Sequence record: PV231353.1
Reading direction: 5' to 3' (one strand)
Length of the DNA: 64,000 nt
Numbering within the stretch: position 1 is the stretch's first letter; each line of letters starts with the position of its first letter. The notes below the pieces were generated by a model, which searched no databases, had not been told where the DNA came from, and was given only the letters and a program-made list of their open reading frames with translations. Shown one piece after another: positions 3,001 through 62,711 of this stretch. The translations under genes were made by a program, and so were the position numbers.

Positions 3001-4471
3001 GATCGTCGTGTCGCCGTTCGACGGCAGCGTCTTCATCTCCTATCCGGGCAACGCGTCGGGCGCGATCGGCACGATCATCGTCACCCCGCCGGCGGCGAGC
3101 CTCACCCACGGGCACGACCTGTCGATCGCCCTGCCCGGCCCGATTATCATCACCGCGCCTGAGGCTCAACCGCAGGCGGGCGCGACGGTCTCGGGTGATA
3201 TCGGCACGATCATCGTCACCCCGCTCGACGGGCATGCCACCGGCGATACCGTCCTGGCTTCGGGGGATATCGGCACGATCGTCGTCTCCACCCCGGACGG
3301 CGAGGCGACGGGACGTGGTCTGGGCTCGGGTGCGATCGGCACGATCGTCATCACCCCGCCGGCCGCGACCCTGACGGCGGAGGCCAACAAGGCGGTCGCC
3401 CTGCCCGGCCCGATCATCGTCACCCCGCCGACCGGCGTGGGTCAGGTCCCCGCTGCGGCGGCGGGTGATCTGGCGACGATCACGATCACCAGCGTCCCCG
3501 AGGCGACGCTGTCGATCGGCCAGGACATCTCGGGCCAGATCGGAACCATCACGGTCACCCCGCCTGAGGCGTTCCCGCAAGGCTCGGTGTTCGTCGATCC
3601 GACCGACGAGATGGTCGTGCAGCTTCTGCCGCCGCAGGCCATCCTCTTCCAGGAAGCCACGGTCATCGTCGGCTTCCCGACGGTCTACCTGATCGCGCCC
3701 GAGGCCATCACCTATTCGCTGGCCGAGTTCGCCTCGATCACCTTGCTGCCGCCGGACGCCTATGTCGACGTTCCGCTGCCGCTGGGCAAGAACCGCATCC
3801 GCTATCGCCGCAACAACACCGCCGGGCTCGCCCCGACCAGCCTGCGGCCCAACGAAATCGCGCTGAACGAGACCGACGGCCTGCTGTTCACGCGTGACGG
3901 GTCCGGCGCGGTCAAAGCCACGCCGCTGGGCTTCCTGACTGGCGCGGGTGTGCCGCCGCCGGTCACCGACAACGGCAAGGTCCTGTCGGGCGGCCTGTCG
4001 TGGGAAACGCCCAACACCCGCTATCTCCTGCCGGTGCGCAACGCGCCGCCGGCTGGTACGCGCATCGCCCTGGGCGAGGGCGTCGTGGGGGTCTCGACCT
4101 TCACCCCGACGGTCGACGTCGTCTATACGCGGCCGTTCTTCGTGGCCAAGACCATCGACATCCAGGCGCTGTCGGTCGACGTCGTCACCACCGCCGCCGC
4201 CACCGCCGAACTCGGGCTGATCGGCTGGTCCCTGGCCGGCGCGCCCGGCGCGACCCTGGCTCTGGGCACGGTCAGTACGGCGACCACGGGGATCAAGACC
4301 GCGACCGGCACGGCCGTGACCTTGACGCCGGGCTGGTATGCCTCCACCTTCAAGGTCACCGGCGCGGCGGGGGCGGCGTTCCGGGCTCCGACCGCACCGA
4401 CGGCGATCGCGCCGGACCTCACCGTGACGCCGGGCGCCCCGGCGCCGGTCATGGCTGACCTGGAGGCCTAA
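2..4471 (+). CDS. Giant virion structural protein, 5'-partial (LamG-like tail end, Gly-rich region, ~30 'G(D/A)IGTIxVxxP' repeats); head-filament/fibre candidate
   Basis: Frame is open from base 2 (EFRATLGAARYVKPFTP, resembles the end of a LamG/ConA domain), so the track start at 89 is not the true start. Poly-Gly region is followed by many SGDIGTIIVTPPE-type repeats. Confidence 0.85.
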   Translation, partial: EFRATLGAARYVKPFTPASFAATSPAVPTLTSTVQAPQGSSGNAANNTATNYIAGRGVGAQTRLTAGTAPSGGDGQISYFIATSTVSASGPIGTVTVSGLTDAAAGAFYPLPPVGSVVVEPYTGARVNYEVTEPGGARIKVEMWGGGGGGSSANNTLTTNGGGGGGYTVIELDLVQGDRITVQTPSGGAGGVNAGSGSAINLGGYPDGGDGYRPALTALNCGGGGSARLWAQGNLAAVAGGGGGAAYGGGGYDFPGGAGGGNLGGPGAYDGVNATFPNGGGTQIAGGVGTANGFNGASLQGGHGGVVSGVANNGCGGGGGYYGGGGGGAYKSGGGGSGYVNTGLPGYRTGSTTGGSGNLPAGMSSPNYVSGIGVGSNGKGGAFTNGGNGRIVISVITPTPGNASGTIGTVDVSGLDNFGLLIGVPTGDIGTIDVVVPVGQSGQPGFAEGPLTTIGVGPPETIPQAQAVVIVPINDQTSILIEPPINAPLEVPGEGIGELPTIVVTGFESSLEAGATFDATDLGTILLVAPEADAVEIPPVETSGAIGTVIVTAPEASTQVIPPVETSGDIGTITVVTVTGAASWNNDVSTSGDIGTIVVTSPEADAVGDDLATGDLGTIIVTAPEGVAHQDANVSSDIGTISVYPIEGGQPADVVGDVPYIQVVTPGATVSASSGDDIALYADIGTIYLLQVYGQGYIISDDNFVHALPDPLIISITAAPEASARGDVHVVQSLPVINVDPPVPLSTGEGFVEGYTGDFIILVDPPVPLTELNANVNVAMPPPIVINGNDAETSLDVTIPFSDTAVFVSGPEALGLGFHGGEMGPPILVTPPEGGPEISVEIFVDPGTILVEAPRFHYIPPITVLPPEGVALDAHSAEASGDLGTITIGVPTGGYQANVAINLPLPTIFVNVPQVVVFASVAVSGDVGTITLTPPDATLTAGVDASFALPGPIVVSTPEATATAGSSAATSGALGTITITPPEGLVSTGTAAATSGAIGTIVVSPFDGSVFISYPGNASGAIGTIIVTPPAASLTHGHDLSIALPGPIIITAPEAQPQAGATVSGDIGTIIVTPLDGHATGDTVLASGDIGTIVVSTPDGEATGRGLGSGAIGTIVITPPAATLTAEANKAVALPGPIIVTPPTGVGQVPAAAAGDLATITITSVPEATLSIGQDISGQIGTITVTPPEAFPQGSVFVDPTDEMVVQLLPPQAILFQEATVIVGFPTVYLIAPEAITYSLAEFASITLLPPDAYVDVPLPLGKNRIRYRRNNTAGLAPTSLRPNEIALNETDGLLFTRDGSGAVKATPLGFLTGAGVPPPVTDNGKVLSGGLSWETPNTRYLLPVRNAPPAGTRIALGEGVVGVSTFTPTVDVVYTRPFFVAKTIDIQALSVDVVTTAAATAELGLIGWSLAGAPGATLALGTVSTATTGIKTATGTAVTLTPGWYASTFKVTGAAGAAFRAPTAPTAIAPDLTVTPGAPAPVMADLEA

Positions 4472-4474
4472 GAC

Positions 4475-5143
4475 ATGCCGACCAACATCAACATGGCGCC
4501 GGACACCACCCTGCTGGCGGACATCCTGCTCAATGGCGGGGCGGGCGCGCCGGCGGACCTGGAGGACGGCGAACTCTACATCGACGAGGCAGGCCGCACG
4601 CTCTATGTCGAGACCGTGGTCGGCGTCCAGCCTATCCCGCTCGACGTCGGTTATGTCCCGCGCCGCCCCAGCGGCACGCCGCTCGACTACGTGGTCAACA
4701 AGACCGAGACGGGCGCCGAGTGGGGGCCGCTGGACGGCGGTGCGGGCGGCTCGCCGTTCGATGCGGCCGAGTTCCGCGTCCCCGGTTTGGCCCCCACGGG
4801 CCTGGACACGGTCGTCATGCCCGGCGCCTCCGGAGGCCTGGGCCTGTTCGAGATGCCGATCCAGGACGTGCTCCTGAGCATCCGCGTACACGCCTCGGCG
4901 GGCGCGGGGTCCGTGACCGTGGCGCTCTATCCGTACAACGGCTCGCTCGGCTCGCTGATCTTCACCCAGACCCTGACCTTCGCCGCCCCCGAGGCCCAGG
5001 TCGTGCCCGTGTCCCAGCCCCTGACGCCGGGCGTCTACGCCTGGGTCTGGACCGGGACCGACGGCCTGACTCTCGACGCGATCAAGGGCTCGCTCCCGTG
5101 GGCGACGCGCGAGCAAACCCATCCCGTGGCGATGAAGTTCTAA
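4475..5143 (+). CDS. Putative virion structural protein, paralogous to the C-terminus of the upstream giant protein
   Basis: 222-aa ORF starting 3 nt after the upstream stop; carries PADLEDGELYID and LTPGVY motifs. Confidence 0.85.
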   Translation: MPTNINMAPDTTLLADILLNGGAGAPADLEDGELYIDEAGRTLYVETVVGVQPIPLDVGYVPRRPSGTPLDYVVNKTETGAEWGPLDGGAGGSPFDAAEFRVPGLAPTGLDTVVMPGASGGLGLFEMPIQDVLLSIRVHASAGAGSVTVALYPYNGSLGSLIFTQTLTFAAPEAQVVPVSQPLTPGVYAWVWTGTDGLTLDAIKGSLPWATREQTHPVAMKF

Positions 5144-5145
5144 CG

Positions 5146-5922
5146 ATGGCGATCCAGAACCCCCATTCCACCACGCCCGGCACCATGCCGCACCTGACGC
5201 CCGGCGAGGTCGGCGTCAACAAGGCCGACGACATTCTCTGGTTCCGCTCCCAGGGCCGGCGCGTGCCGATCATCCTGAGCGACCTCACCCGCGCCCCGCC
5301 GGCGGACGGCTATGTGGGCGCGCCCCTGGCCCTGGAGGGCGGCGCGCCGGTCTGGAACGTCAAGCTCTTGCCGTCCTCGATTGTCGCCGGCGCGGTCAAG
5401 GTCGACCTGCCGCCCGCCGCCGGCCTGCACGCCATGCCCAGCGTCCTGCTCCAAGGCCTGGGAACCGACCGCGTCCTGGCGGCCAACGACCTGGACCTCA
5501 CCCCCTTCTATGTCCGCTCCGACTCCATCACCCTGACCCATTTGGCGTTCAGCGTCCGCTCGGCTGGCGCGCCGGCCATGCGCGTGGGGATCGTCGACAG
5601 CTTCGGCGTCGTCCAGGCCGACATCTTGGTCGCCGCGCCGGTCGTGGGCGCCAATGTCGTGGCTCTCTCGCCGGTCCTGACCCTTCAACGCGGCGTCTAC
5701 CGCACCATCCTGGCGACGACCGGGGCGGTGACCGTGGGAATCGCCACGGGCGCGCGCATGGAGCAGGGCTGGGACATCATCGCCGACGCCCCGTCGTTCA
5801 TCCGGGGCTACAGTGGCAGCAAGAACACCGGCGGCGGTATCGGGAGCCTGCCGACGCTCACCCCGCGCCGCGACCCCGCGCCGGGCCAGGATCACGCCGT
5901 CCTCTTGCGCTGGACGGCGTGA
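5146..5922 (+). CDS. Putative virion structural protein (third paralogue)
   Basis: ATG at 5146, 2 nt after the previous TAA, inside track ORF 4720..5922; carries PHLTPGEVGVN and LQRGVY motifs. Confidence 0.85.
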   Translation: MAIQNPHSTTPGTMPHLTPGEVGVNKADDILWFRSQGRRVPIILSDLTRAPPADGYVGAPLALEGGAPVWNVKLLPSSIVAGAVKVDLPPAAGLHAMPSVLLQGLGTDRVLAANDLDLTPFYVRSDSITLTHLAFSVRSAGAPAMRVGIVDSFGVVQADILVAAPVVGANVVALSPVLTLQRGVYRTILATTGAVTVGIATGARMEQGWDIIADAPSFIRGYSGSKNTGGGIGSLPTLTPRRDPAPGQDHAVLLRWTA

Positions 5923-8875: not shown

Positions 8876-8962
8876 GGTAGGTGGTTCCGGCCTGGGGCCG
8901 GACCCGGTTGCTAACCGGCCGGAGCCGCAAGGCTTGGGGTTCGATTCCTCCTCCTACCGCCA
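8876..8962 (+). tRNA. tRNA-Ser(GCT)
   Basis: CCGG-TTGCTAA-CCGG; V arm AGCC-GCAA-GGCT; GCCA end. Confidence 0.88.
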
Positions 8963-10078: not shown

Positions 10079-10154
10079 TCAGGGTTAGTTTAGCTGGTAA
10101 AACACTGGGTTTTGGCCCCGGCGTCGCTAGGTTCGAAGCCTGCACCCTGATCCA
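10079..10154 (+). tRNA. tRNA-Gln(TTG)
   Basis: CTGGG-TTTTGGC-CCCGG; bulged T stem; CCA. Confidence 0.88.
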
Positions 10155-10165
10155 TTTGAGTTTAT

Positions 10166-10240
10166 TCCAGTCAATGCACAAGGTGTGCAGCGGCACTGTT
10201 AATGCCTGTGAGCCCGGTTCGATTCCGGGGTCTGGAGCCA
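10166..10240 (+). tRNA. tRNA-Asn(GTT)
   Basis: GGCA-CTGTTAA-TGCC; GCCA end. Confidence 0.9.
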
Positions 10241-10266
10241 ACACGCCGGCCTCGGCCGGCACATGC

Positions 10267-10350
10267 GCCCTGGTAACCGAGGGGGATTACGAGATCCCTT
10301 AGTCGTAGCAGGAGTTGAAAAGGGTGGTTCAAATCCACTCCAGGGTGCCA
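10267..10350 (+). tRNA. Non-canonical tRNA-Arg(ACG)-like
   Basis: Acceptor GCCCTGG/CCAGGGT-G-CCA; T arm GGTGG-TTCAAAT-CCACT; anticodon arm becomes GGGA-TTACGAA-TCCC if the G at 10293 is removed; D arm nearly absent; long V region. Confidence 0.55.
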
Positions 10351-10357
10351 AATTCAT

Positions 10358-10440
10358 AGCGCGCAGGCCGAGCAGGATTATCGTCAGGCGTCGCCCTCCG
10401 AAGGCGAAGAGGCCCGGTTCGAGTCCGGGGCGCGCTGCCA
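10358..10440 (+). tRNA. tRNA-Arg(CCG), enlarged D region
   Basis: TCGCC-CTCCGAA-GGCGA; acceptor AGCGCGC/GCGCGCT; GCCA. Confidence 0.85.
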
Positions 10441-10443
10441 TTC

Positions 10444-10522
10444 GCGCAGGTAGCTCAACGGACCCAGAGCGGCCGTCTTCTACACGGAAGGTTGGGGGTT
10501 CGAGATCCCTCCCTGCGCGCCA
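10444..10522 (+). tRNA. tRNA-Arg(TCT)
   Basis: CCGT-CTTCTAC-ACGG; T-loop TTCGAGAT (one extra G); GCCA. Confidence 0.9.
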
Positions 10523-10857
10523 AGCTTGACGAGCGATGCCGAATCGCTCAGCTTCCCGATTGGCTCTCGATGGGCCGCCACTGCACGCCGCCGGCGCCCT
10601 CCCGGTACAAGGAGGGGCGCACGTCGGCGACGTTCCAACCCAGTTCCGGACGATCTTCGAACGCGGCCTGCCGTGGAGGGGTGCTGGAAGGGCCGGGGTT
10701 GTGGAAACCGTCGAGCATCTCCTACATCCGGATCGGGCCTCCTGGGGGCTCCTCCGGTCAACCAGGGCCTGACCCGACCCCGGAGATGCGCCGTCTACGA
10801 TCACCCAGGACCGTCCTGGCGGTGGAAAGGGTCTGAAATTTTTCTGGCGCTGATGTG

Positions 10858-10886
10858 TTGACACTCCTCGGAGGCTCGGCTAAAAC
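10858..10886 (+). promoter_or_regulatory. Consensus Caulobacter-type sigma70 promoter
   Basis: TTGACA-N15-GCTAAAAC. Confidence 0.8.
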
Positions 10887-10891
10887 CAGCA

Positions 10892-10989
10892 GCGTCAGAG
10901 CGGCGTTGGACCACGAGGTCCGCCGCGAGCTTCTGCGTTGTCGTCAGGAACGGCCCGCCAGCAATCCCGCTGGCGGGTCGTTTCGTTTT
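10892..10989 (+). ncRNA. Candidate ~100-nt small RNA
   Basis: Lies between the promoter at 10858 and the terminator at 10949-10989; no ORF with a start codon fits inside. Confidence 0.5.
10949..10989 (+). terminator. Intrinsic terminator
   Basis: AACGGCCCGCCAGC-AATCCC-GCTGGCGGGTCGTT-TCGTTTT. Confidence 0.8.
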
Positions 10990-11025
10990 GGGCGCAATGC
11001 GACGTTCAGTCCAACCATGGGTAGT

Positions 11026-11040
11026 GTCATGAATCTTGAC
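11026..11040 (+). promoter_or_regulatory. GANTC/-35 motif copy (GTCATGAATCTTGAC)
   Basis: Upstream of the 11110 ORF. Confidence 0.7.
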
Positions 11041-11109
11041 TTTCGGCGCTTATTCCGGTAGCTTTCCCGACATCAGCAAACGCTCACAAGTCGGGGACCG
11101 AGAGCCGTC

Positions 11110-11526
11110 ATGTCGCAAGACCACAACGGCTCGTCCTCGGGCCAAGAACGCATCTACCAGAAACTGGATGAGCTTGGCTCCATGCACGCGCGCACCCGTG
11201 AAGATATTGCCCGCATCCAGGAGATGATGCGAGCGGTCGGTTCGTCGCAGGAGCGGATCGAAAAGCGCCAGGACCATTTCGAGCGCGAAATCTGGCGTGA
11301 GATGGAAGATCGCGCCGCGCGCACGAGCGCCCAACTCGACGAGATCAAGAGCCACACCAACCTGCGCATCGAGGAGATCGAGGCCAAGGTCGACACGATC
11401 CGCGAGGAACGGATCGCCGAGAAGGCCCAGTGGCGCGGCCCCGAGAAGGCCATCGCCGCCCTGGTCGCCGTCGCCGGGGCCATCGCCGCCTTCGCCACGA
11501 TCCTCACTTTCCTGAAGGGACACTAG
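11110..11526 (+). CDS. Coiled-coil protein with a C-terminal TM helix (XhlA/holin-like architecture)
   Basis: Charged heptad region followed by AIAALVAVAGAIAAFATILTFL. Confidence 0.8.
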   Translation: MSQDHNGSSSGQERIYQKLDELGSMHARTREDIARIQEMMRAVGSSQERIEKRQDHFEREIWREMEDRAARTSAQLDEIKSHTNLRIEEIEAKVDTIREERIAEKAQWRGPEKAIAALVAVAGAIAAFATILTFLKGH

Positions 11527-45852: not shown

Positions 45853-46812
45853 TTAATTCGCCGCAGGGGCGTCCCAGACGGCTTCGCCCGGCACGAACTT
45901 GCGGAACTGCTGGAAGCCCCGGAAATTGCCTTGGTGCGCCTTGGTCAGCGCGTCGCCCGGACGGGCGGCGCGGGCTTGGTGCTCCAGCGGCGAGGCGTGG
46001 ACCGGCTGGGAGGCGGCCAGCTTCAGGAAGGTCCCGACGTCACGGGTGATCGAGGCCTTGGAGCCGTCGAAGTCGCGATAGCTGGCGCGCGCGCAGCGCG
46101 ACGCCGACGAGACGATCAGGAGGCGGTCGATCTCGGAGACCTCGCGCAGATTGACGAAGGCGAAGTCGATCAGGCCCAGATTGTAGTCGGCCTGAGCCCG
46201 CTCGTTGCGCAGGAAGCGCGAGATCGTGTCGATGTCCTCTTCCAGGTTGATGAACGGCAGGTGCCATTCGCCCGGCCGCAGCAGGCGCGGGGTCTGGGCG
46301 TACAGGTCCGCCTTGATCCGCCGCGCCAGGGTCTGGATTTCGTCCTGGGCGCCGGCGTCGTCGCGCAGGGTCAGGAAGTTGATCCAGTCGGTGGCCGAGA
46401 CCACGACCGAGATGTAGCCGAACCATTCGGTGGCGCGGTTGACCCACTGCTTATGGATGTTGAGGCCGCCTTCCTCGCGCGGCAGGCCCAGCTTGGCGAC
46501 GCCGGCGCGCACCGCGTCCGCCATCTCCATCCAGATCGCCTCGGCCGCCTCCTGGTCGGCGTTCGACAGATACTCGCCCGGTTGCATGCCCGGCTTGTTC
46601 TCGCGGAACAGCGGCACGTAGGGCTCGTCCAGCAGCATCTTCTTGAGCGGGATGGCCCGGCTCGACGAGGCGTTGCGGCTGAACACCCGATGGGTCATGA
46701 AGTCGGCGTGGACCATGCGCGGATAGCGCAGCAGCAGACTGTCCAGGCGCTTGCCGTCCTGGGTGATCGACGCGGCCAGCGGCGTAGTTTGAACGAAATC
46801 GAGGGTCGGCAT
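45853..46812 (-). CDS. thyX: Flavin-dependent thymidylate synthase
   Basis: THRVFSRNASSSRA (ThyX motif), W.NF..LR....AQ.EI, HASPLEHQA. Confidence 0.9.
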   Translation of the reverse strand: MPTLDFVQTTPLAASITQDGKRLDSLLLRYPRMVHADFMTHRVFSRNASSSRAIPLKKMLLDEPYVPLFRENKPGMQPGEYLSNADQEAAEAIWMEMADAVRAGVAKLGLPREEGGLNIHKQWVNRATEWFGYISVVVSATDWINFLTLRDDAGAQDEIQTLARRIKADLYAQTPRLLRPGEWHLPFINLEEDIDTISRFLRNERAQADYNLGLIDFAFVNLREVSEIDRLLIVSSASRCARASYRDFDGSKASITRDVGTFLKLAASQPVHASPLEHQARAARPGDALTKAHQGNFRGFQQFRKFVPGEAVWDAPAAN

Positions 46813-46815
46813 GGA

Positions 46816-47352
46816 TCAGTCCTGGTCGGCGTCGAGCACGATCATGGCGATCGCGTTGTGGAGATCGTCGATCCCCCGGTCGTTGGTGATGGTCCAGTCG
46901 GGGACGATCAGGTCCATCTCCAGTTCGGAGGCGTGCTGGGAGGCGGCGTCCTTGGTGACCTTGCGCGGGTCCTCGACGCGGATGATCCGGCCCTTCAGCG
47001 CCCGCACGGCGGCGGCCTCGTTCAGGAAGCGGCAGTCCGAGCAGACGACATGGCTGTAGCCGCCGGCCGCCCGCTTGAAGGCCTCGATCCAGGTGTCCGA
47101 CTCATAGGAGCGGAACATCTCGGTGCCGATCTTCTGGAGGATGTCGCGGGGGCTCTTGAAGGGGTAGCGGTCCAGGACCTGCTCCTTCAGCACGGGGTCC
47201 GACATCTCAAGGTCGGTCACCCCGTAGGCGATCTTGGCGATCTCCCGCAGCGGGTCGGCGAAGTTGATGTGGCGATAGCCGGCGGCTTCCAGGCGGCGCG
47301 CGGCCGTCGTCTTGCCGTGCCCGCGCTTGCCAGTGATGGCGATCAGGTCCAT
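46816..47352 (-). CDS. Deoxynucleoside monophosphate kinase
   Basis: ITGKRGHGKTT, FADPL, R.ILQKIGTE, SDCRF.NE, H.SE motifs. Confidence 0.93.
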   Translation of the reverse strand: MDLIAITGKRGHGKTTAARRLEAAGYRHINFADPLREIAKIAYGVTDLEMSDPVLKEQVLDRYPFKSPRDILQKIGTEMFRSYESDTWIEAFKRAAGGYSHVVCSDCRFLNEAAAVRALKGRIIRVEDPRKVTKDAASQHASELEMDLIVPDWTITNDRGIDDLHNAIAMIVLDADQD

Positions 47353-47361
47353 GGGGGTCTC

Positions 47362-48696
47362 CTAGCGAAGGATGGTGAGGGTCTTGGCCGCGCGGGTGAT
47401 GCCCGTGTAGAGCCACTTGTCTTCGTCGGCCCGGAAGCAGCCGCTTTCGTCGATCAGGACGACGTCGTCCCACTGCGAGCCCTGGCTGGCGTGGCAGGTG
47501 ATTGCGTAGGCCCAGTCGGCGACGATCGAGCTTTTCAGCGCCCGCCAAGCCTTCTGCTCGGGAGCGGTGTAGCCCTTGTTGGTGCGCGAGAAGTGCTCCT
47601 CGAACATCCCCTGGAACATCGTCTTGTCGTGGTACTCGACACCGTTCTCGTCGCTGAACGAGCCCAGGAACGTCGCGTCGCCGTGGGTGAACTCGACCGA
47701 CTTGAGCGAGGTCACCTCGGTGCCGTTGGTCAGGTCCGGGTTGTCGCGGACGTTCTTACGGATGATCAGCGGCTCGTTCTTCTGAGGCCCGACGCGTTCG
47801 CCGGGATAGTCGACGTAGCCGAACTCCGAACGCAGTTGCTGATTGACGTTCCAGCGCGTCTTGTTGCGACCCACGATGAACTGCGGGCGGTCCTCGAAGT
47901 CGAAGACCTCCTCGTATTCGGCGCGGCGCATCACTTTGACGCCGCCTCCGTAGTCACGGAACGGCAGGTCCTTGCCCTCGCGCGCCAGGGTCGACAGGTG
48001 GATGATCGGATTGTCCTTGGCCTGCCGGTGGATTTCCGACAGGAAGAAGTCGGGGTCATTGGCGAGCAGGCCCGCGTCGTCCTCGACCGGCGGAAGCTGC
48101 CCCGGATCGCCCATGGCGAAGATGGGCACCCCGTATTCCATCAGGTCGTCGGTCATCCGGCGCCCGACCATGGACGCCTCGTCGACGACGATCAGGCTCG
48201 CCAACTGGATGGCGCTGTCGGGGTTCAGTTGGAAGTTGATCTTGTCCTCGCGGTAGGCCGCGCTGAGTTCGGCCTCCAGGCGCTTGATCAGCTTCTTTTG
48301 CGTGAAGATGTGCTGGTCCTTGTCCGGATCGCCGCCTTCCATGGCGCAGATGTAGAGCGCTTCGCTGAGCGCTTCCCGGTGGTTTTCCAGGTCGGTTTCG
48401 AGTTGTGAGATCGGGGCCGGCTTGGCGCGGTAGATCGCCGAATGGATCGTGCCCGCGTTGGTGTTGGCGTAGCCCTGGGCCTTCAGCTTGGTCCGCATGA
48501 CCTTGGCGGCCTTGCCCGTCGGGGCGACGAAGGCCACGGTCTCGGGCGCGATGCCGAGGCTGTCGAGAATGAACGGCAGGATGGTGGACTTGCCCGAGCC
48601 GGCGAAGCCGGTCATCGTCGTCAGGGGTTGCCCGTCCTTGATCTTTTCGACAACGACCTTGCGGGCCGTGTCCTGTTGTGCGCTGAGCGTAGTCAT
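47362..48696 (-). CDS. RecD/Dda-like SF1 helicase
   Basis: GFAGSGKST, APTGKAA, TIHS.IY, VDEASMV, GDPGQLPPV, YAITCHASQGSQW motifs. Confidence 0.93.
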   Translation of the reverse strand: MTTLSAQQDTARKVVVEKIKDGQPLTTMTGFAGSGKSTILPFILDSLGIAPETVAFVAPTGKAAKVMRTKLKAQGYANTNAGTIHSAIYRAKPAPISQLETDLENHREALSEALYICAMEGGDPDKDQHIFTQKKLIKRLEAELSAAYREDKINFQLNPDSAIQLASLIVVDEASMVGRRMTDDLMEYGVPIFAMGDPGQLPPVEDDAGLLANDPDFFLSEIHRQAKDNPIIHLSTLAREGKDLPFRDYGGGVKVMRRAEYEEVFDFEDRPQFIVGRNKTRWNVNQQLRSEFGYVDYPGERVGPQKNEPLIIRKNVRDNPDLTNGTEVTSLKSVEFTHGDATFLGSFSDENGVEYHDKTMFQGMFEEHFSRTNKGYTAPEQKAWRALKSSIVADWAYAITCHASQGSQWDDVVLIDESGCFRADEDKWLYTGITRAAKTLTILR

Positions 48697-60219: not shown

Positions 60220-61092
60220 CGATGGGCTGAGACTACACCCATCAGCAATCCCGCTTCGAGGATTATTCCCCAGGTGCGACCCCAGGTATTCCCTCGACGT
60301 CCACCAGACCCCTTGCGGTAGTCCAGTCCGAGATCATCGCCGCCGTTCTTGCGCACCCCGAAGGGATTGCGGGTCTGGCGTTTGACCCATCATGGCGAAC
60401 TACTCGACAGTTCCTTCCCCGCTGGGCTTGCGACCCACTCACCGGCGCTAACCGGCTGACGAAGCTCTTCCTATCGACACCTCGCGGGCTTGCGACCCTT
60501 GAGATGACTCCGTTACCCGAAGGCCGGAGCATTTGGCGACTTACGTCCGCCACTGGACCAGTCTTTGCGTTTTTCATCGAAGCGGGGATTGAACCCGCGA
60601 CCGACAGCTTAAGAGGCTGTTGCACTACCACTGTGCTATTCGCAAACCCACCAAGACGTGCTGGTCCAGTTGTTCCCAGAGCTTTTGACCCCAGAAATGC
60701 AACACGCCTCATATCTTTCGCCTTGCGGGCTACTCGACTGCTCTTCAGGACCCCGTCTCCCCCAACCTTTCGGCCAGGATGCCCAGCACCCCTCGAACTG
60801 AAGCAAAGCTCTTCACCGCGAAGTGTCGAACCCTGCAACCCAAACGGTTATCCGTACTCCCTAGACACGCTTGCACGGGATAGTCCGCTTGCGACGGACT
60901 GGCGGTTAAAGCCTCGGAGTTACCCCGGCCCCGCCTTGTCTCCCACGGTCTTCAGGTCTATCCCCTTTTGCAAGAGGCGGCCAGCTTCCCAGCCCGGACC
61001 CGTCGGCTTCCTCTGTCCTCTTGCGAGGTCGGGCGGCCTATGGGAGACCGTCCCTGTCACCCCGTCGCCGGGGCTTTCGTCAGAAGCGACGA
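60220..61092 (-). ncRNA. Large ornate ncRNA (~870 nt), GOLLD-like, with embedded tRNA-like domain
   Basis: Consensus promoter and terminator; about ten GNRA-capped hairpins; repeated GTCGAGTAG and GAAGAGC modules; 3' pseudoknot. Family name is inferred, not searched. Confidence 0.72.
60575..60645 (-). tRNA. tRNA-Lys(CTT)-like domain inside the large RNA, without CCA
   Basis: GCAC-AGTGGTA-GTGC, ACAGC-CTCTTAA-GCTGT, GCGGG-TTCAATC-CCCGC; only 4-bp acceptor; no CCA. Confidence 0.75.
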
Positions 61093-61125: not shown

Positions 61126-61181
61126 CGACTTTTTTCGTCTCGCCCTCGAAATTTTTCGACAGTCGTGGGTGACGACAGTGC

Positions 61182-61209
61182 TTGACATTCTCGGAGCCGC
61201 GTGCTAGGT
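61182..61209 (+). promoter_or_regulatory. Sigma70 promoter of tmRNA (divergent)
   Basis: TTGACA-N15-GCTAGGT. Confidence 0.8.
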
Positions 61210-61211
61210 GT

Positions 61212-61590
61212 CGGAAATCGTTGTAATTCGGACAACGGAACTGGCGGCAAGACAGGGGTGCGAATCCCCTCGCCTCCACCATCGACGCCCGGCGCTGGGA
61301 GTACGCGACTCCTGGGCAGGGAGTGTTACCCTGGCGGGCTGCGGCCCGAGCCAAAGGTAGCCGGGCGTCGTTGATGGGGGCGACTAGCTTTCGATTGGCG
61401 CTCGGGACTGAAAGACGCAACGGTGGGTGACCTCCACATCGGCTTGCCGGTGATCGGGTCAGGCAACAGTAAATGTCGCCGCCAATGACAACGACGTCGT
61501 GGCTTTCGCCTCGGCTCGTGAAGCCATCGCCGCCTAATAAGCGGTAGAGGAGCCCGCCGGGAGCTTGGCAACAGAATCCCGGCAACCCCC
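61212..61590 (+). ncRNA. ssrA: Circularly permuted two-piece tmRNA
   Basis: Acceptor piece ends ...AGGGG-TGCGAAT-CCCCT-CGCCTCC-A-CCA (61281). Coding piece starts GGGGGCG (61376), giving G3:U70. Tag frame ANDNDVVAFASAREAIAA-TAA-TAA (61481-61540); GGCAACAGAA near the 3' end. Confidence 0.93.
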
Positions 61591-61718
61591 TTTCGCAGGC
61601 GGGAACACCAACAGGCGATCTGTCGGGCGACCGATTTCCGATCCGTGTTCCCGTCTTCGAAAGGTGGTCAGGCCTACCCTCTTGGTGTGCTATCCAAGGG
61701 TCTGGCCACTTTACAGAA

Positions 61719-61797
61719 CGCGGGGTAGAGGAGTCCGGTTGTCCTCGTCTGGCTCATAACCAGGAGATCGTGGGTTCAAATCCCACTCCCGCTCCCA
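61719..61797 (+). tRNA. tRNA-Met(CAT), initiator-like
   Basis: CGCGGGG with C1xU72 mismatch; TCTGG-CTCATAA-CCAGG; CCA. Confidence 0.9.
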
Positions 61798-62075
61798 ATG
61801 CGAACGCCGGCTGTTGAGAACGACGGCGTGACAAGCTCGGAGAGAACGAGCACTCCAGTCCGGGGTATGAGGCCGGACTAGCGGACGCCGTAGCGATTGC
61901 AGGCGTGACACCCGGAGATAGCGGGACCGATTTTCCAGGCTCCATGCCCGGCGCGTCGGGGGCGGACAGTTAATCCGCCCGGCGTCAGAGGATGAGGCTA
62001 GTTCTCGGCGATGAAGCTGCGCGCGCAGTGAGAAAGCCAGGGCATGGCGCTTGGAAAGTCGGTTCGCGGTTCGTC

Positions 62076-62168
62076 CGCTACGAGATGGAGATGTCGCCGG
62101 TTCGAGTCCGGCAGGTCCCCCAAAAGGAGGCCTTAGCTCAGTCGGTAGAGCGCTCCTATCCCACCTTT
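62076..62168 (+). ncRNA. YrlA-type Y-RNA-like circularly permuted tRNA mimic
   Basis: Order is stem strand, T arm (GCCGG-TTCGAGT-CCGGC), acceptor stem closed by CAAAA loop, D arm (GCTC-AGTCGGTA-GAGC), complementary stem strand, TTT. Confidence 0.7.
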
Positions 62169-62253
62169 GGTACGGTGGCTCGACAGGTAAGGCATCGGCC
62201 TCATAAGCCGAGGGTTCGTCCCAATCCTGGTTCAAATCCAGGTCGTACCTCCA
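62169..62253 (+). tRNA. tRNA(CAT), elongator Met or Ile2, with long variable arm
   Basis: GGTACGG/TCGTACC-T-CCA; TCGGC-CTCATAA-GCCGA; V arm GGG-TTCGT-CCC. Confidence 0.88.
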
Positions 62254-62327
62254 AATTGACGCTTGACCCCAGGCCGCAGGCTGCTAAGCTTCCCCGGTCG
62301 GGATCGTCCCGCGTCCTTTCCAAGGTC

Positions 62328-62358
62328 AAGCCCCCGGAGCCTCGCTTCGGGGGCTTTT
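62328..62358 (+). terminator. Intrinsic terminator closing the RNA island
   Basis: AAGCCCCCGGAG-CCTCG-CTTCGGGGGCTT-TT. Confidence 0.85.
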
Positions 62359-62711
62359 CAGTTCTTGACCACCCGCAGGCGCCGGGCCTCGTTGGCGCGC
62401 TCCTCCGCCGCCACGCGCGAGACGTCTTGCAGATGCGCCTTGGCGATCAGGTCGGGCGCGCCCACGGCCCGGAAGGGCACCTTGACGGAGAGGTCAACAT
62501 AGCGCCGCAAGAGCGGCTCGAACTCCAGGCCTCGCGCCTGGGCGATCCGCGACAGTGCGCCGGCGACGATCGCCACGACCAGGACGTTGGTCGGTGTCTC
62601 CTTGGTCAGGGTCCAGATGCCCGGTATAGACTGCCCAGGATGAAGTTCCTGCCGCGCCACGTCATCGGCGGCGGCGCGGAAGAGGTTCTCGTAAGGGACG
62701 TTTTCGAGCAT
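62358..62711 (-). CDS. Hypothetical protein
   Basis: ATG 62711 within track ORF 62358..62903. Confidence 0.75.
   Translation of the reverse strand: MLENVPYENLFRAAADDVARQELHPGQSIPGIWTLTKETPTNVLVVAIVAGALSRIAQARGLEFEPLLRRYVDLSVKVPFRAVGAPDLIAKAHLQDVSRVAAEERANEARRLRVVKN

Follow-up and report, generated by a model that had tools for sequence, protein, structure and literature searches.

A circularly permuted, YrlA-like tRNA mimic in the tmRNA/tRNA operon of Caulobacter phage RBC57

Permuted and non-decoding copies of the tRNA body

The bacterial and phage Y RNAs of the YrlA type (Rfam RF02553; Chen et al. 2014, PMC4201824) have a constant order of parts, in which one strand of a closing stem is followed by the V region, the T arm, an acceptor-like stem-loop, the D arm and the second strand of the closing stem, and in which the nucleotides of the tRNA core are conserved. 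They adjoin rsr, and a GNCGAA(N0-1)G motif near their 5′ end is the presumed contact with Ro60 (PMC4201824). RNase P cleaves the YrlA RNA of M. smegmatis, whose acceptor stem has 7 bp, and the RNA acquires a CCA (PMC4201824). YrlA-type RNAs are also known in phages, including CcrColossus, a relative of the phage analyzed here.

Circularly permuted tRNA genes were reportedly described by Soma and colleagues in 2007 in Cyanidioschyzon merolae and other algae. In these the 3′ half lies upstream of the 5′ half, with a short linker at the acceptor end; the genes have a full anticodon loop and a bulge-helix-bulge, and yield, through a circular intermediate, chargeable tRNAs. We know of no machinery for this type of maturation in bacteria. 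In the two-piece tmRNA of Alphaproteobacteria (RF04321/RF01849), too, the acceptor 5′ strand comes after the T arm and acceptor 3′ strand, a long intervening segment lying between them, and there are an mRNA-like tag frame, an encoded CCA and alanine identity (G3:U70). Other copies of the tRNA body that RNase P processes, namely mascRNA/MALAT1 and the viral tRNA-like structures, do not decode but are able to engage tRNA-processing enzymes; they have the normal 5′-to-3′ topology and a free acceptor end.

Anatomy of the element and of its operon

The window, i.e., the whole stretch of 64,000 nucleotides of record PV231353.1 that was analyzed, belongs to Caulobacter phage RBC57 of the phiCbK group (100% identity). 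It contains 28 tRNA genes, of which 27 encode CCA. An RNA operon in it has the order tmRNA, tRNA-fMet, an X RNA of ~270 nt, the permuted element, tRNA-Met, and terminator, and the genes adjoining the element encode small hypothetical proteins and a helicase. Whereas YrlA is found beside rsr, this element thus lies within a tmRNA/tRNA operon. The features are the following.

61189-61628, plus strand: permuted (two-piece) tmRNA gene, operon member upstream of the permuted element (ARAGORN and Rfam)
61719-61797, plus strand: tRNA-fMet, operon member upstream of the permuted element (ARAGORN and Rfam)
61798-62065, plus strand: X RNA, ~270 nt, structured and conserved (alignment of phiCbK-like phages)
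62066-62078, plus strand: 5′ mini-hairpin GCGG/TTCGT/CCGC (GCGGTTCGTCCGC) (sequence; a hairpin in the minimum-energy fold)
62084-62090, plus strand: closing stem, 5′ strand GAT-GGAG, pairing with 62153-62160 (minimum-energy and centroid folds)
62091-62095, plus strand: variable-loop equivalent ATGTC, positions 44-48, with A44, G46 and C48 (sequence and Rfam YrlA alignment)
62096-62112, plus strand: T arm GCCGG/TTCGAGT/CCGGC (sequence, Rfam YrlA alignment and RNAfold)
62113-62133, plus strand: acceptor-like hairpin closed by CAAAA (sequence and RNAfold)
62113-62120, plus strand: acceptor 3′ strand AGGTCCC and C73 (sequence)
62121-62125, plus strand: CAAAA loop (sequence)
62126-62133, plus strand: G-1 and acceptor 5′ strand GAGGCCT (sequence)
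62134-62152, plus strand: U8, A9, D arm and G26 (sequence and Rfam YrlA alignment)
62136-62151, plus strand: D arm GCTC/AGTCGGTA/GAGC (sequence)
62153-62160, plus strand: closing stem, 3′ strand CTCC-T-ATC, with a bulged T (RNAfold)
62161-62168, plus strand: 3′ tail CCACCTTT, ending at the expected RNase P cut for tRNA-Met (sequence)
62169-62253, plus strand: tRNA-Met (CAU), 85 nt, with a long, class-II-like variable arm (ARAGORN and Rfam)
62329-62360, plus strand: intrinsic-terminator-like hairpin and T run that closes the RNA operon (sequence)

The permuted cloverleaf itself occupies 62084-62160. It has the YrlA-type order, running from the T arm through the acceptor stem closed by CAAAA to the D arm, with both ends meeting at the position of the anticodon stem. 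The initial annotation had described a perfect T arm ahead of a perfect D arm, an acceptor stem with CAAAA as its loop, and ends that meet in a stem at the anticodon position, and all of this holds: the two arms are intact at 62096-62112 and 62136-62151, the acceptor-like hairpin (7 bp plus 1) is paired at seven of eight positions (A2.C71 is mismatched, and G4.U69 is a G.U pair), and RNAfold pairs 62084-62090 with 62153-62160. The extent then proposed, 62076-62168, does contain these features, but the unit starts earlier, as it corresponds to an insertion of 103 nt (62066-62168).

Within the closing stem, the GGAG of the 5′ strand corresponds to tRNA positions 40-43. As in YrlA, the core nucleotides of tRNA are all conserved (U8, A14, G15/C48, G18G19, G26/A44, G46 and T54-Psi55-C56-A58), and the 7-bp acceptor stem matches that of the M. 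smegmatis RNA. The sequence needs of tRNA enzymes (TruB, DusA, RNase P and the enzyme that adds CCA) are present, namely UUCGA in the T-loop, GG in the D-loop and a stack of 7+5 bp. The minimum-energy fold given by RNAfold is the permuted cloverleaf, and the fold-energy z-score (-0.19) is uninformative, which is usual for tRNAs. The element resembles mascRNA and the viral tRNA-like structures in being a non-decoding copy of the tRNA body, but differs from them in being permuted and in having a closed acceptor stem. It shares the order of T arm and acceptor strands with the two-piece tmRNA, whose gene lies ~600 nt upstream in the same operon, but has a loop of 5 nt, a true D arm and a G3-C70 pair. 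With no tag frame, no G3:U70 and no CCA, it was rejected as a two-piece tmRNA, which is the gene placed at 61189-61628.

A T-loop followed after 14-40 nt by a D arm occurs twice in the window for 0.00 expected, and hence the element cannot be attributed to chance. The second occurrence is an ordinary tandem tRNA junction. The permuted element is set apart from such a junction because neither ARAGORN nor Rfam calls a tRNA on either side of its T-loop/D-arm junction, because its acceptor strands are complementary at six of seven positions (a level reached by 20 of the 702 cross-pairs of the phage's own tRNAs), and because ARAGORN calls a canonical cloverleaf in the joined-up sequence. The tRNAs of the window include no donor of the two halves. 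None of 185,579 bacterial species genomes contains the exact 40-mer that spans the acceptor junction, and no prophage or host source was found. Scans of IMG/VR and metagenomes anchored on tRNA-Met retrieved only known phages and one unrelated tRNA-Tyr.

The cloverleaf called in the joined-up sequence is a tRNA-Gly(CCC), which raises the alternative of a genuine permuted tRNA gene. Its ends would be cut and joined (e.g., by the RtcB ligase of the phage), the CAAAA loop would be opened by RNase P and 3′ trimming, and the addition of CCA would give a chargeable tRNA. The element does have the 3′ half upstream of the 5′ half and a short linker at the acceptor end, as in the algal genes. The claim that it has no anticodon and no free CCA needs a small correction: CCA is not encoded and the stem continues at the anticodon position, but once the ends were joined, 62158-62164 (ATCCCAC) would have the form of an anticodon loop (CCC), as the flank reads A-U-CCC-A-C, with U33 and A37 in place. 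The phage has tRNAs for Gly-GCC and Gly-UCC and none for Gly-CCC, and RtcB is found in 30 Caulobacter phage records. Nevertheless, this alternative is highly improbable. The co-occurrence of U33 and a purine at 37 is a 1-in-8 coincidence, and the equivalent flank in Colossus and Gurke lacks U33 and is not loop-like. According to RNAfold, the extended stem takes up loop positions 32-34 in pairs, so that where the algal genes have an anticodon loop one finds a continuing stem, and there are U31.U39 and A2.C71 mismatches. Bacterial glycine identity is given by U73 and C2:G71, for which C73 and A2.C71 are unfit. CCA is missing when nearly all the tRNAs of the window encode it (27/28), there is no bulge-helix-bulge motif, bacteria to our knowledge lack the splicing endonuclease, and the rtcB of RBC57 is annotated in two pieces. 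If the tRNA-Gly(CCC) reading were true, a permuted tRNA gene would be known outside algae for the first time.

Relation to YrlA RNAs and to Ro60

As initially claimed, the permuted element has the topology of the YrlA tRNA-like domain, and a permissive local search with the Rfam YrlA model aligns model positions 23-85 of 114 with 62088-62155 (29.7 bits, E = 2e-4 in 561 nt). This cmsearch had been suggested along with the initial annotation, and its outcome is a local match well under the Rfam gathering cutoff of 69 bits; at gathering thresholds there is no YrlA call. The score is also barely above those of tandem tRNA junctions of the same window (25.3 and 22.9 bits), and since such junctions score nearly as high as real elements, this matters for scans of phage genomes for Y RNAs. 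The missed cutoff is not decisive alone, because the YrlA-like RNAs found beside Ro60 in CcrColossus, Gurke and bacterial relatives of the Colossus Ro60 also score just 30-60 bits.

The GNCGAA(N)G motif has no match in 61798-62168, a region from which the Colossus-type GGTGGCGTAG...CTTCG module is equally absent, and the element lacks a GGCGTAG-type motif. The closing stem has 4+3 bp and is separated from tRNA-Met by just 8 nt, so the long stem that binds Ro60 cannot form. A tblastn search of 50,697 phage records with the TROVE protein of Colossus reveals Ro60 in CcrColossus and CcrPW, and gives no match in the phiCbK group, RBC57 included; none lies within ~4 kb of the element on the same strand. 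In Colossus the Ro60 gene (gp139) is located between the lysis genes and an HTH gene, where RBC57 and its relatives have no room for it. Four other CcrColossus ORFs (gp233, gp218, gp297 and gp440) were checked and have no TROVE domain. Y RNA membership fails on three counts, i.e., the Rfam cutoff, the GNCGAA(N)G motif and a nearby Ro60. With no Ro60 gene, no Ro60 motif and no long stem, the term phage Y RNA, which the initial annotation had used, is not supported in its defining sense. The Rfam YrlA cutoff itself misses the tested Ro60-adjacent Y RNAs of this phage and bacterial clade.

The element has diverged counterparts in relatives that do encode Ro60. In CcrColossus, CcrPW and seven Brevundimonas phages (vB_BpoS), a permuted tRNA-like element with the same four-helix cloverleaf lies directly 5′ of the same tRNA-Met, and the spacing between element and tRNA-Met is 8-17 nt in every lineage having one. 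The 17-mer of the T arm is identical in RBC57, CcrColossus and CcrPW. Of the five Brevundimonas copies read, three have a 3′ tail that ends in a U run, as do RBC57, Colossus and PW; those of Gurke and Kikimora do not. While the body of the RBC57 element is fully canonical, in the copies of Colossus, PW and the Brevundimonas phages the D arm is degenerate (GTGT.AACGGNA.GCAC or GAGG...CCTC) and the acceptor hairpin is longer, and these copies also have a conserved GGATAAACGG-type 5′ extension and an extra upstream T-like hairpin.

MAFFT aligned the phiCbK-, Colossus- and Brevundimonas-type elements incorrectly when they were taken together, and the eight sequences were hence aligned by hand. In this alignment, which is fitted to the structure, 159 of 163 cells are canonical and 14 of 21 pairs are changed on both sides, compared with 31-43% canonical cells and one to five such pairs in shifted-partner controls. 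In the unbiased MAFFT alignment of the Brevundimonas subset, all cells are paired (100%), there are four compensatory pairs, and none of 500 shuffles reaches the observed covariation score. In these alignments, all four helices are kept through compensatory changes across three phage genera. When a covariance model is made from the Brevundimonas copies, the RBC57 element is its top hit locally, but at only 8.4 bits (E = 0.034 in 601 nt), and is not recovered from a search of 197 kb; the Colossus element is also undetected at genome scale. Synteny, the T arm identical to that of Colossus, and architecture are the grounds for a putative homology of the phiCbK type with the Colossus/Brevundimonas type. 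We define here an unannotated group, the tRNA-Met-adjacent permuted tRNA-like RNAs of Dolichocephalovirinae, and the RBC57 element has its site and its four-helix permuted cloverleaf.

Some of these genomes connect the group to RNAs beside Ro60. A link to Y RNAs is given by Marchewka, where a paralog (43 bits) of the element adjacent to tRNA-Met lies immediately upstream of Ro60, and CcrColossus has ~7 Y-like units upstream of Ro60. Permuted modules that have the same T and D arms and are closed by a hairpin occur in other viral contigs, and at least three of them adjoin tRNA genes.

One may then ask if the element is a true Y RNA, binding a Ro60/Rsr supplied by the host and tethering it to an effector as YrlA does. 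Besides the topology and the local Rfam match, all seven Brevundimonas phages have their counterpart on the strand of Ro60, ~3.3 kb downstream of that gene, and Asticcacaulis, from the bacterial family of the host, has close Ro60 homologs with YrlA-like RNAs upstream. We regard it as improbable, given a phage without Ro60, the absence of both motifs, and a closing stem so short that an 8-nt tail leads straight into the next tRNA. There is also no Caulobacter in the best 80 of 142 Ro60 relatives across 185,579 species genomes, a weak argument as the scan finds close relatives only.

Presence, absence and possible roles in the phiCbK group

The 103-nt insertion that contains the element lies between the X RNA and tRNA-Met, its boundary being set by the empty-site phages BL57, RBC63, BL10 and Rogue, where the X RNA abuts a near-identical tRNA-Met without spacer. 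By alignment, the insertion is carried by RBC57, phiCbK and Karma, and nine further phiCbK-group records match the whole region of 371 nt. Magneto and Swift have at the same site an unrelated insert of 143 nt, in which no permuted tRNA was found. The element is dispensable, because it is absent from close relatives and replaced by an unrelated insert in these two phages. The sequence of the element is identical among carriers, and this was dropped as a sign of selection because local background divergence is merely 1-2%. A literature search returned no paper with expression data for this locus. The mini-hairpin that opens the insertion (62066-62078) resembles a T arm with a shortened loop.

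The empty sites bear directly on a role in cis, in which the tRNA-like fold would recruit RNase P or other processing enzymes, or insulate folding, and so aid the maturation of tRNA-Met or of the X RNA. The constant position 8-17 nt upstream of tRNA-Met and the U run at the end of the tail, a feature common in RNase P leaders, would fit such a helper. However, the empty-site phages join the X RNA directly to tRNA-Met, so no helper is needed, and we consider this role slightly more improbable still than a true Y RNA.

A relic is a real rival, though an unlikely one. The element would be a functionless leftover of a Y-RNA or tRNA-like module, or a tandem tRNA duplicate trimmed at both sides, that arrived by illegitimate recombination at GGTTCG microhomology and is still transcribed owing to its position in the operon. 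This is consistent with its patchy presence among near-identical phages, with the unrelated insert of Magneto and Swift at the same hot spot, and with the 7-nt direct repeat CGGTTCG (62060-62066 and 62067-62073) at the left junction, beside a T-loop-like GGTTCG. The carriers show no variation from which selection could be demonstrated, and the phage may have lost Ro60 or never had it. Furthermore, neighboring isoacceptors such as Pro/Pro have cross-complementary acceptor strands, and a trimmed tandem duplicate of these would resemble the element. On the other hand, one would expect decay in a relic, and the tRNA core is flawless, more canonical than its counterparts in the phages that encode Ro60. 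Both helices that require matched halves are intact, the same-site counterparts of three phage genera retain the four helices by compensatory changes, and no tRNA of the window is the donor.

The reading that we tentatively favor is that of a stand-alone, Ro60-independent tRNA mimic of the YrlA type, possibly a competitor for tRNA-directed enzymes. It would be one continuous RNA of ~80-100 nt folded as a circularly permuted tRNA body, probably co-transcribed with the flanking tRNAs, the terminator following tRNA-Met, and its 3′ end would be produced when RNase P cuts the 5′ end of tRNA-Met, 8 nt downstream. The predicted fold is L-shaped, with an elbow made by the D and T loops, both intact, and an acceptor/T stack of 12 bp capped by CAAAA, and would have neither an anticodon loop nor a CCA end. 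It may be recognized by host enzymes reading the elbow and the acceptor of tRNAs, the candidates being RNase P, TruB, Dus enzymes and the CCA-adding enzyme. RNase P may also open the CAAAA loop, as in the YrlA of M. smegmatis with its 7-bp stem.

YrlA's tRNA-like domain has been proposed to inhibit an anticodon nuclease competitively (Hughes et al. 2020, PMC7790460). By analogy, and speculatively, an element acting without Ro60 could compete for tRNA-directed proteins such as anticodon nucleases, which would bind the decoy and find no anticodon loop to cut. A decoy role is plausible, if purely speculative, and would be an accessory and dispensable function beside the 28 tRNAs and the tmRNA of the phage. 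The more specific proposal, that an anticodon-less tRNA body from the tmRNA/tRNA operon competitively inhibits tRNA-targeting defence nucleases of the host or other tRNA-directed enzymes, and complements the tRNA set and the RtcB repair ligase of the phage, is doubtful. The link between the element and RNA repair is weak: in phiCbK ~32 kb separate the RtcB gene from the element, and rtcB is split into two ORFs in the record of RBC57.

RBC57 provides a natural occurrence of the tRNA-like module of Y RNAs without Ro60 and without a Ro60-binding motif. The phage-host pair concerned, phiCbK and Caulobacter crescentus, is well studied and genetically tractable, and there are natural controls in the sister phages with empty sites, those with an unrelated insert, and the Ro60-encoding relatives with a diverged copy at the same site. 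Hence, the stand-alone action of a tRNA mimic is directly testable. The Ro60-independent reading, if true, would show that Y RNAs have in their tRNA-like module a separate function, one that can be detached from Ro60.

The RNA operons of these phages hold several unannotated structured RNAs. For example, the X RNA (61798-62065), which has no match in an Rfam search, is common to the aligned phiCbK-like phages, and its 5′ part is also present in CcrColossus and CcrPW.

The permuted tRNA-like RNA and its operon

Sequence searches place the region 61150-62400 in Caulobacter phage RBC57 (PV231353.1; 100% identity), and its identity with phiCbK, Karma, and the Shapirovirus Ccr phages is 95-99%. The RNA genes of the window comprise 28 tRNA genes, a permuted tmRNA (61189-61628), and a GOLLD RNA. 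The latter (60224-60710, - strand; 169 bits, over the cutoff) is without annotation in the RBC57 record and has tRNA-Lys (60573-60646) inside it. Directly 3′ of tRNA-Ser(GGA), positions 8876-8958 (+) give a tRNA-Sec-like match of 44 bits (cutoff 47) with no ARAGORN call, which may be an extra unusual tRNA of the array.

The element is part of an RNA-only transcription unit, in the order tmRNA, tRNA-fMet (61719-61797), X RNA (61798-62065, a structured RNA), element, and tRNA-Met (62169-62253), closed by a terminator-like hairpin at ~62329-62360. The initial annotation had described a permuted cloverleaf here, with the T arm preceding the D arm, and all its coordinates prove correct when the sequence is read.

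Features of the permuted cloverleaf, 5′ to 3′
62084-62090, +, closing stem 5′ strand GATGGAG
between this strand and the T arm, +, variable loop ATGTC
62096-62112, +, T arm
between the T arm and the CAAAA loop, +, acceptor strand AGGTCCC and C73
62121-62125, +, loop CAAAA
directly 3′ of the CAAAA loop, +, G-1 and acceptor strand GAGGCCT
62136-62151, +, D arm, preceded by U8 and A9
62153-62160, +, CTCC-T-ATC, preceded by G26
between CTCC-T-ATC and tRNA-Met, +, tail CCACCTTT
from 62169, +, tRNA-Met

The permuted cloverleaf is the minimum-energy structure of the element (RNAfold), and swapping its halves back in silico gives a canonical cloverleaf (ARAGORN); no complete tRNA is called on either side. 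The acceptor strands are complementary at 6/7 positions, plus G-1:C73, and a 6/7 match is reached by only 20 of the 702 cross-pairs among the phage's own tRNAs. A T-loop with a D arm after it is found at two places in the window (0.00 expected), the second being an ordinary Val/Ile tandem tRNA junction. A permuted tRNA-like structure at this position is confirmed. One might also see in it a true permuted tRNA-Gly(CCC) gene, as the formal anticodon loop carries U33 and A37. However, these two residues amount to a 1-in-8 coincidence and the loop is not common to the Colossus or Gurke counterparts, while the acceptor does not resemble that of tRNA-Gly, and CCA is absent. A hypothetical protein of 41 aa is annotated in the RBC57 record (61998-62123, -), overlapping X RNA and the element's T arm; this ORF is probably spurious, overlying RNA genes, and Colossus gp163 is a similar case.

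Insertion site and counterparts in related phages

When eight phiCbK-like phages are aligned, the element stands out as an insertion of 103 nt (62066-62168) that RBC57, phiCbK, and Karma share without any difference and that BL57, RBC63, BL10, and Rogue lack; in these four, X RNA directly adjoins tRNA-Met. The whole 371-nt region is matched by nine further phiCbK-group records. Identity among the carriers is uninformative, because the flanking spacers diverge by only 1-2%. Magneto and Swift have, in place of the element, a structured 143-nt insert that is unrelated to it. It occupies the exact element site (1066-1209 of the CcrMagneto locus L003; same in CcrSwift) and has a strongly predicted multi-branch fold (z -2.2). 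Small structured RNA cassettes seem to have a hot spot at the X RNA/tRNA-Met junction. A relic or recombination by-product would be in line with the patchy distribution of the element and with a direct repeat of 7 nt at its left junction, but the flawless tRNA core and the conservation of the helices across genera argue against it. A cis-acting role in processing of the neighboring RNAs is disfavored, as the empty-site phages do without the element.

X RNA (~270 nt) is conserved and structured between tRNA-fMet and tRNA-Met in the aligned phiCbK-like phages, its 5′ part is also present in Colossus and PW, and it has no match in Rfam. Of the 67 pairs in its consensus fold, which includes a closing helix of ~28 bp, 7 show compensatory changes, and its invariant block GTCAGGGGATGAGGCTAGT recurs within the tmRNA intervening loop of Brevundimonas phage Gurke. 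The tRNA-Met (+ strand, 85 nt), conserved in Caulobacter and Brevundimonas phages, combines a class-II-style long variable arm with a CAU anticodon and U73; this combination is unusual, and its amino-acid identity is therefore uncertain.

CcrColossus and CcrPW, which encode Ro60, have, immediately 5′ of their own tRNA-Met, a permuted tRNA-like element that has diverged. Its 17-nt T arm is identical to that of RBC57, its acceptor hairpin is longer, with a C-G to A-U exchange between the two phages, and its D arm is degenerate. Each of the seven Brevundimonas vB_BpoS phages also has an element in this place, with Ro60 on the same strand ~3.3 kb upstream of it. In a hand-made structural alignment of eight sequences, 159/163 cells are canonical pairs and 14 of the 21 pairs are changed on both sides (31-43% paired and 1-5 such pairs in shifted-partner controls). 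Because this alignment was fitted by hand, the Brevundimonas subset was retested on a plain MAFFT alignment, in which every cell (100%) is paired and 4 pairs are compensatory; its covariation score is attained by 0/500 shuffles. Built from five Brevundimonas sequences, a covariance model identifies a paralog directly upstream of Ro60 in Marchewka (43 bits), which ties the tRNA-Met-adjacent elements of these phages to Ro60-adjacent Y-like RNAs. With this model, the RBC57 and Colossus elements come first within their local regions, at only 8-9 bits, and the family membership of the RBC57 element is therefore not based on a significant model score. The grounds for its putative place in this syntenic family are its position, its architecture, and the T arm it has in common with Colossus.

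Relation to YrlA and Ro60

The Rfam YrlA model does not match the element at its cutoff, and a permissive search gives a local match of 29.7 bits to model positions 23-85 of 114, i.e., the tRNA-like domain only. CcrColossus, for which Ro60 and Y-like RNAs are reported in PMC12135203 (citing PMC4201824), encodes a TROVE/Ro60 protein (gp139; Pfam, E 1.2e-17); about seven Y-like units are arrayed upstream of it on the same strand (46480-47650, -, of the CcrColossus locus L022). The model matches three of these, at only 42, 30.5, and 29.9 bits; the YrlA-like RNAs just upstream of Ro60 in bacterial relatives of the Colossus protein, including Asticcacaulis, score 30-60 bits. Since these Ro60-adjacent RNAs score low, the cutoff is too strict for this clade. 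The YrlA score by itself says little more than that a T arm is followed by a D arm, and tandem tRNA junctions in the same window score 25.3 and 22.9 bits. One Colossus unit overlaps an annotated "tRNA-Gln," and in Gurke an annotated "tRNA-Ser" overlaps a YrlA-like match.

Each Colossus unit is closed by the module GGGTGGCGTAG..(A)CTTCG / GTTCCCCC. Neither the GNCGAA(N)G motif nor the Colossus-type GGTGGCGTAG...CTTCG module is found in 61798-62168, and the gap between the stem and the next tRNA is only 8 nt. With Colossus Ro60 as query, tblastn over 50,697 phage records detects Ro60 in CcrColossus, CcrPW, seven Brevundimonas phages, and many others, but in no phiCbK-group phage; the Colossus Ro60 site, between lysis genes and an HTH gene, leaves no room for it in RBC57 and relatives. 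The initial reading as a YrlA-like Y RNA is supported in part: the YrlA-like topology is upheld, and a Y RNA in the Ro60 sense is not, as motif and phage Ro60 are both missing. Absence of the motif also speaks against a Y RNA serving a host Ro60; no Caulobacter genome is among the best 80 of 142 Ro60 relatives, in a scan that detects close relatives only. We class the element as an orphan tRNA mimic of the YrlA type that lies within the tmRNA/tRNA operon of a phage.

When IMG/VR is scanned for the T-loop and D arm of the element at a spacing of 14-40 nt, 22 loci result, about half of them tandem tRNAs and about ten hairpin-closed permuted modules. In one module (L111), Ro60 is encoded 470 nt downstream. 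At least three others (L108, L112, and L125, on unrelated viral contigs) lie beside ordinary tRNA genes, with no Ro60 seen in the contig DNA examined, so that orphan modules are not unique to RBC57. A related module (L121) has no tRNA called nearby.

Possible role and RNA-repair genes

The element would be co-transcribed with the neighboring RNA genes, its 3′ end presumably being made by the RNase P cut at tRNA-Met. The YrlA of M. smegmatis is cut by RNase P and then given CCA (PMC4201824), and the feature allowing this cut is matched by the 7-bp acceptor stem and 5-bp T stem of the element. The RNA may fold as an L shape and be recognized by enzymes that read the elbow and acceptor of tRNAs. 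What is established is the fold, its setting in the operon, and the lack of Ro60, and with modest confidence we suggest a Ro60-independent tRNA mimic that would compete for tRNA-directed proteins. Hughes et al. suggested the same competitor role for the YrlA tRNA-like domain, against an anticodon nuclease (PMC7790460). The element is a natural, tractable system to ask what the tRNA-like module does without Ro60.

RtcB is present in 30 Caulobacter phage records. In RBC57, the gene carries two separate CDS annotations outside the window (10135-11369 of the record; 4136-5370 of the extracted locus L130), for which a frameshift, a pseudogene, or an error in sequencing could account; one full-length match is seen in the other phiCbK-like phages listed, except BL57 (three pieces). 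The RNA-repair and tRNA toolkit of Colossus is large, and most of it is missing from the phiCbK group. It includes (L017-L022) Ro60, the Y-RNA array, RtcB, an Rnl-type RNA ligase with RlaP, and a CCA-adding enzyme, as well as a Thg1-like tRNA-His guanylyltransferase and a short HisRS-like gene.
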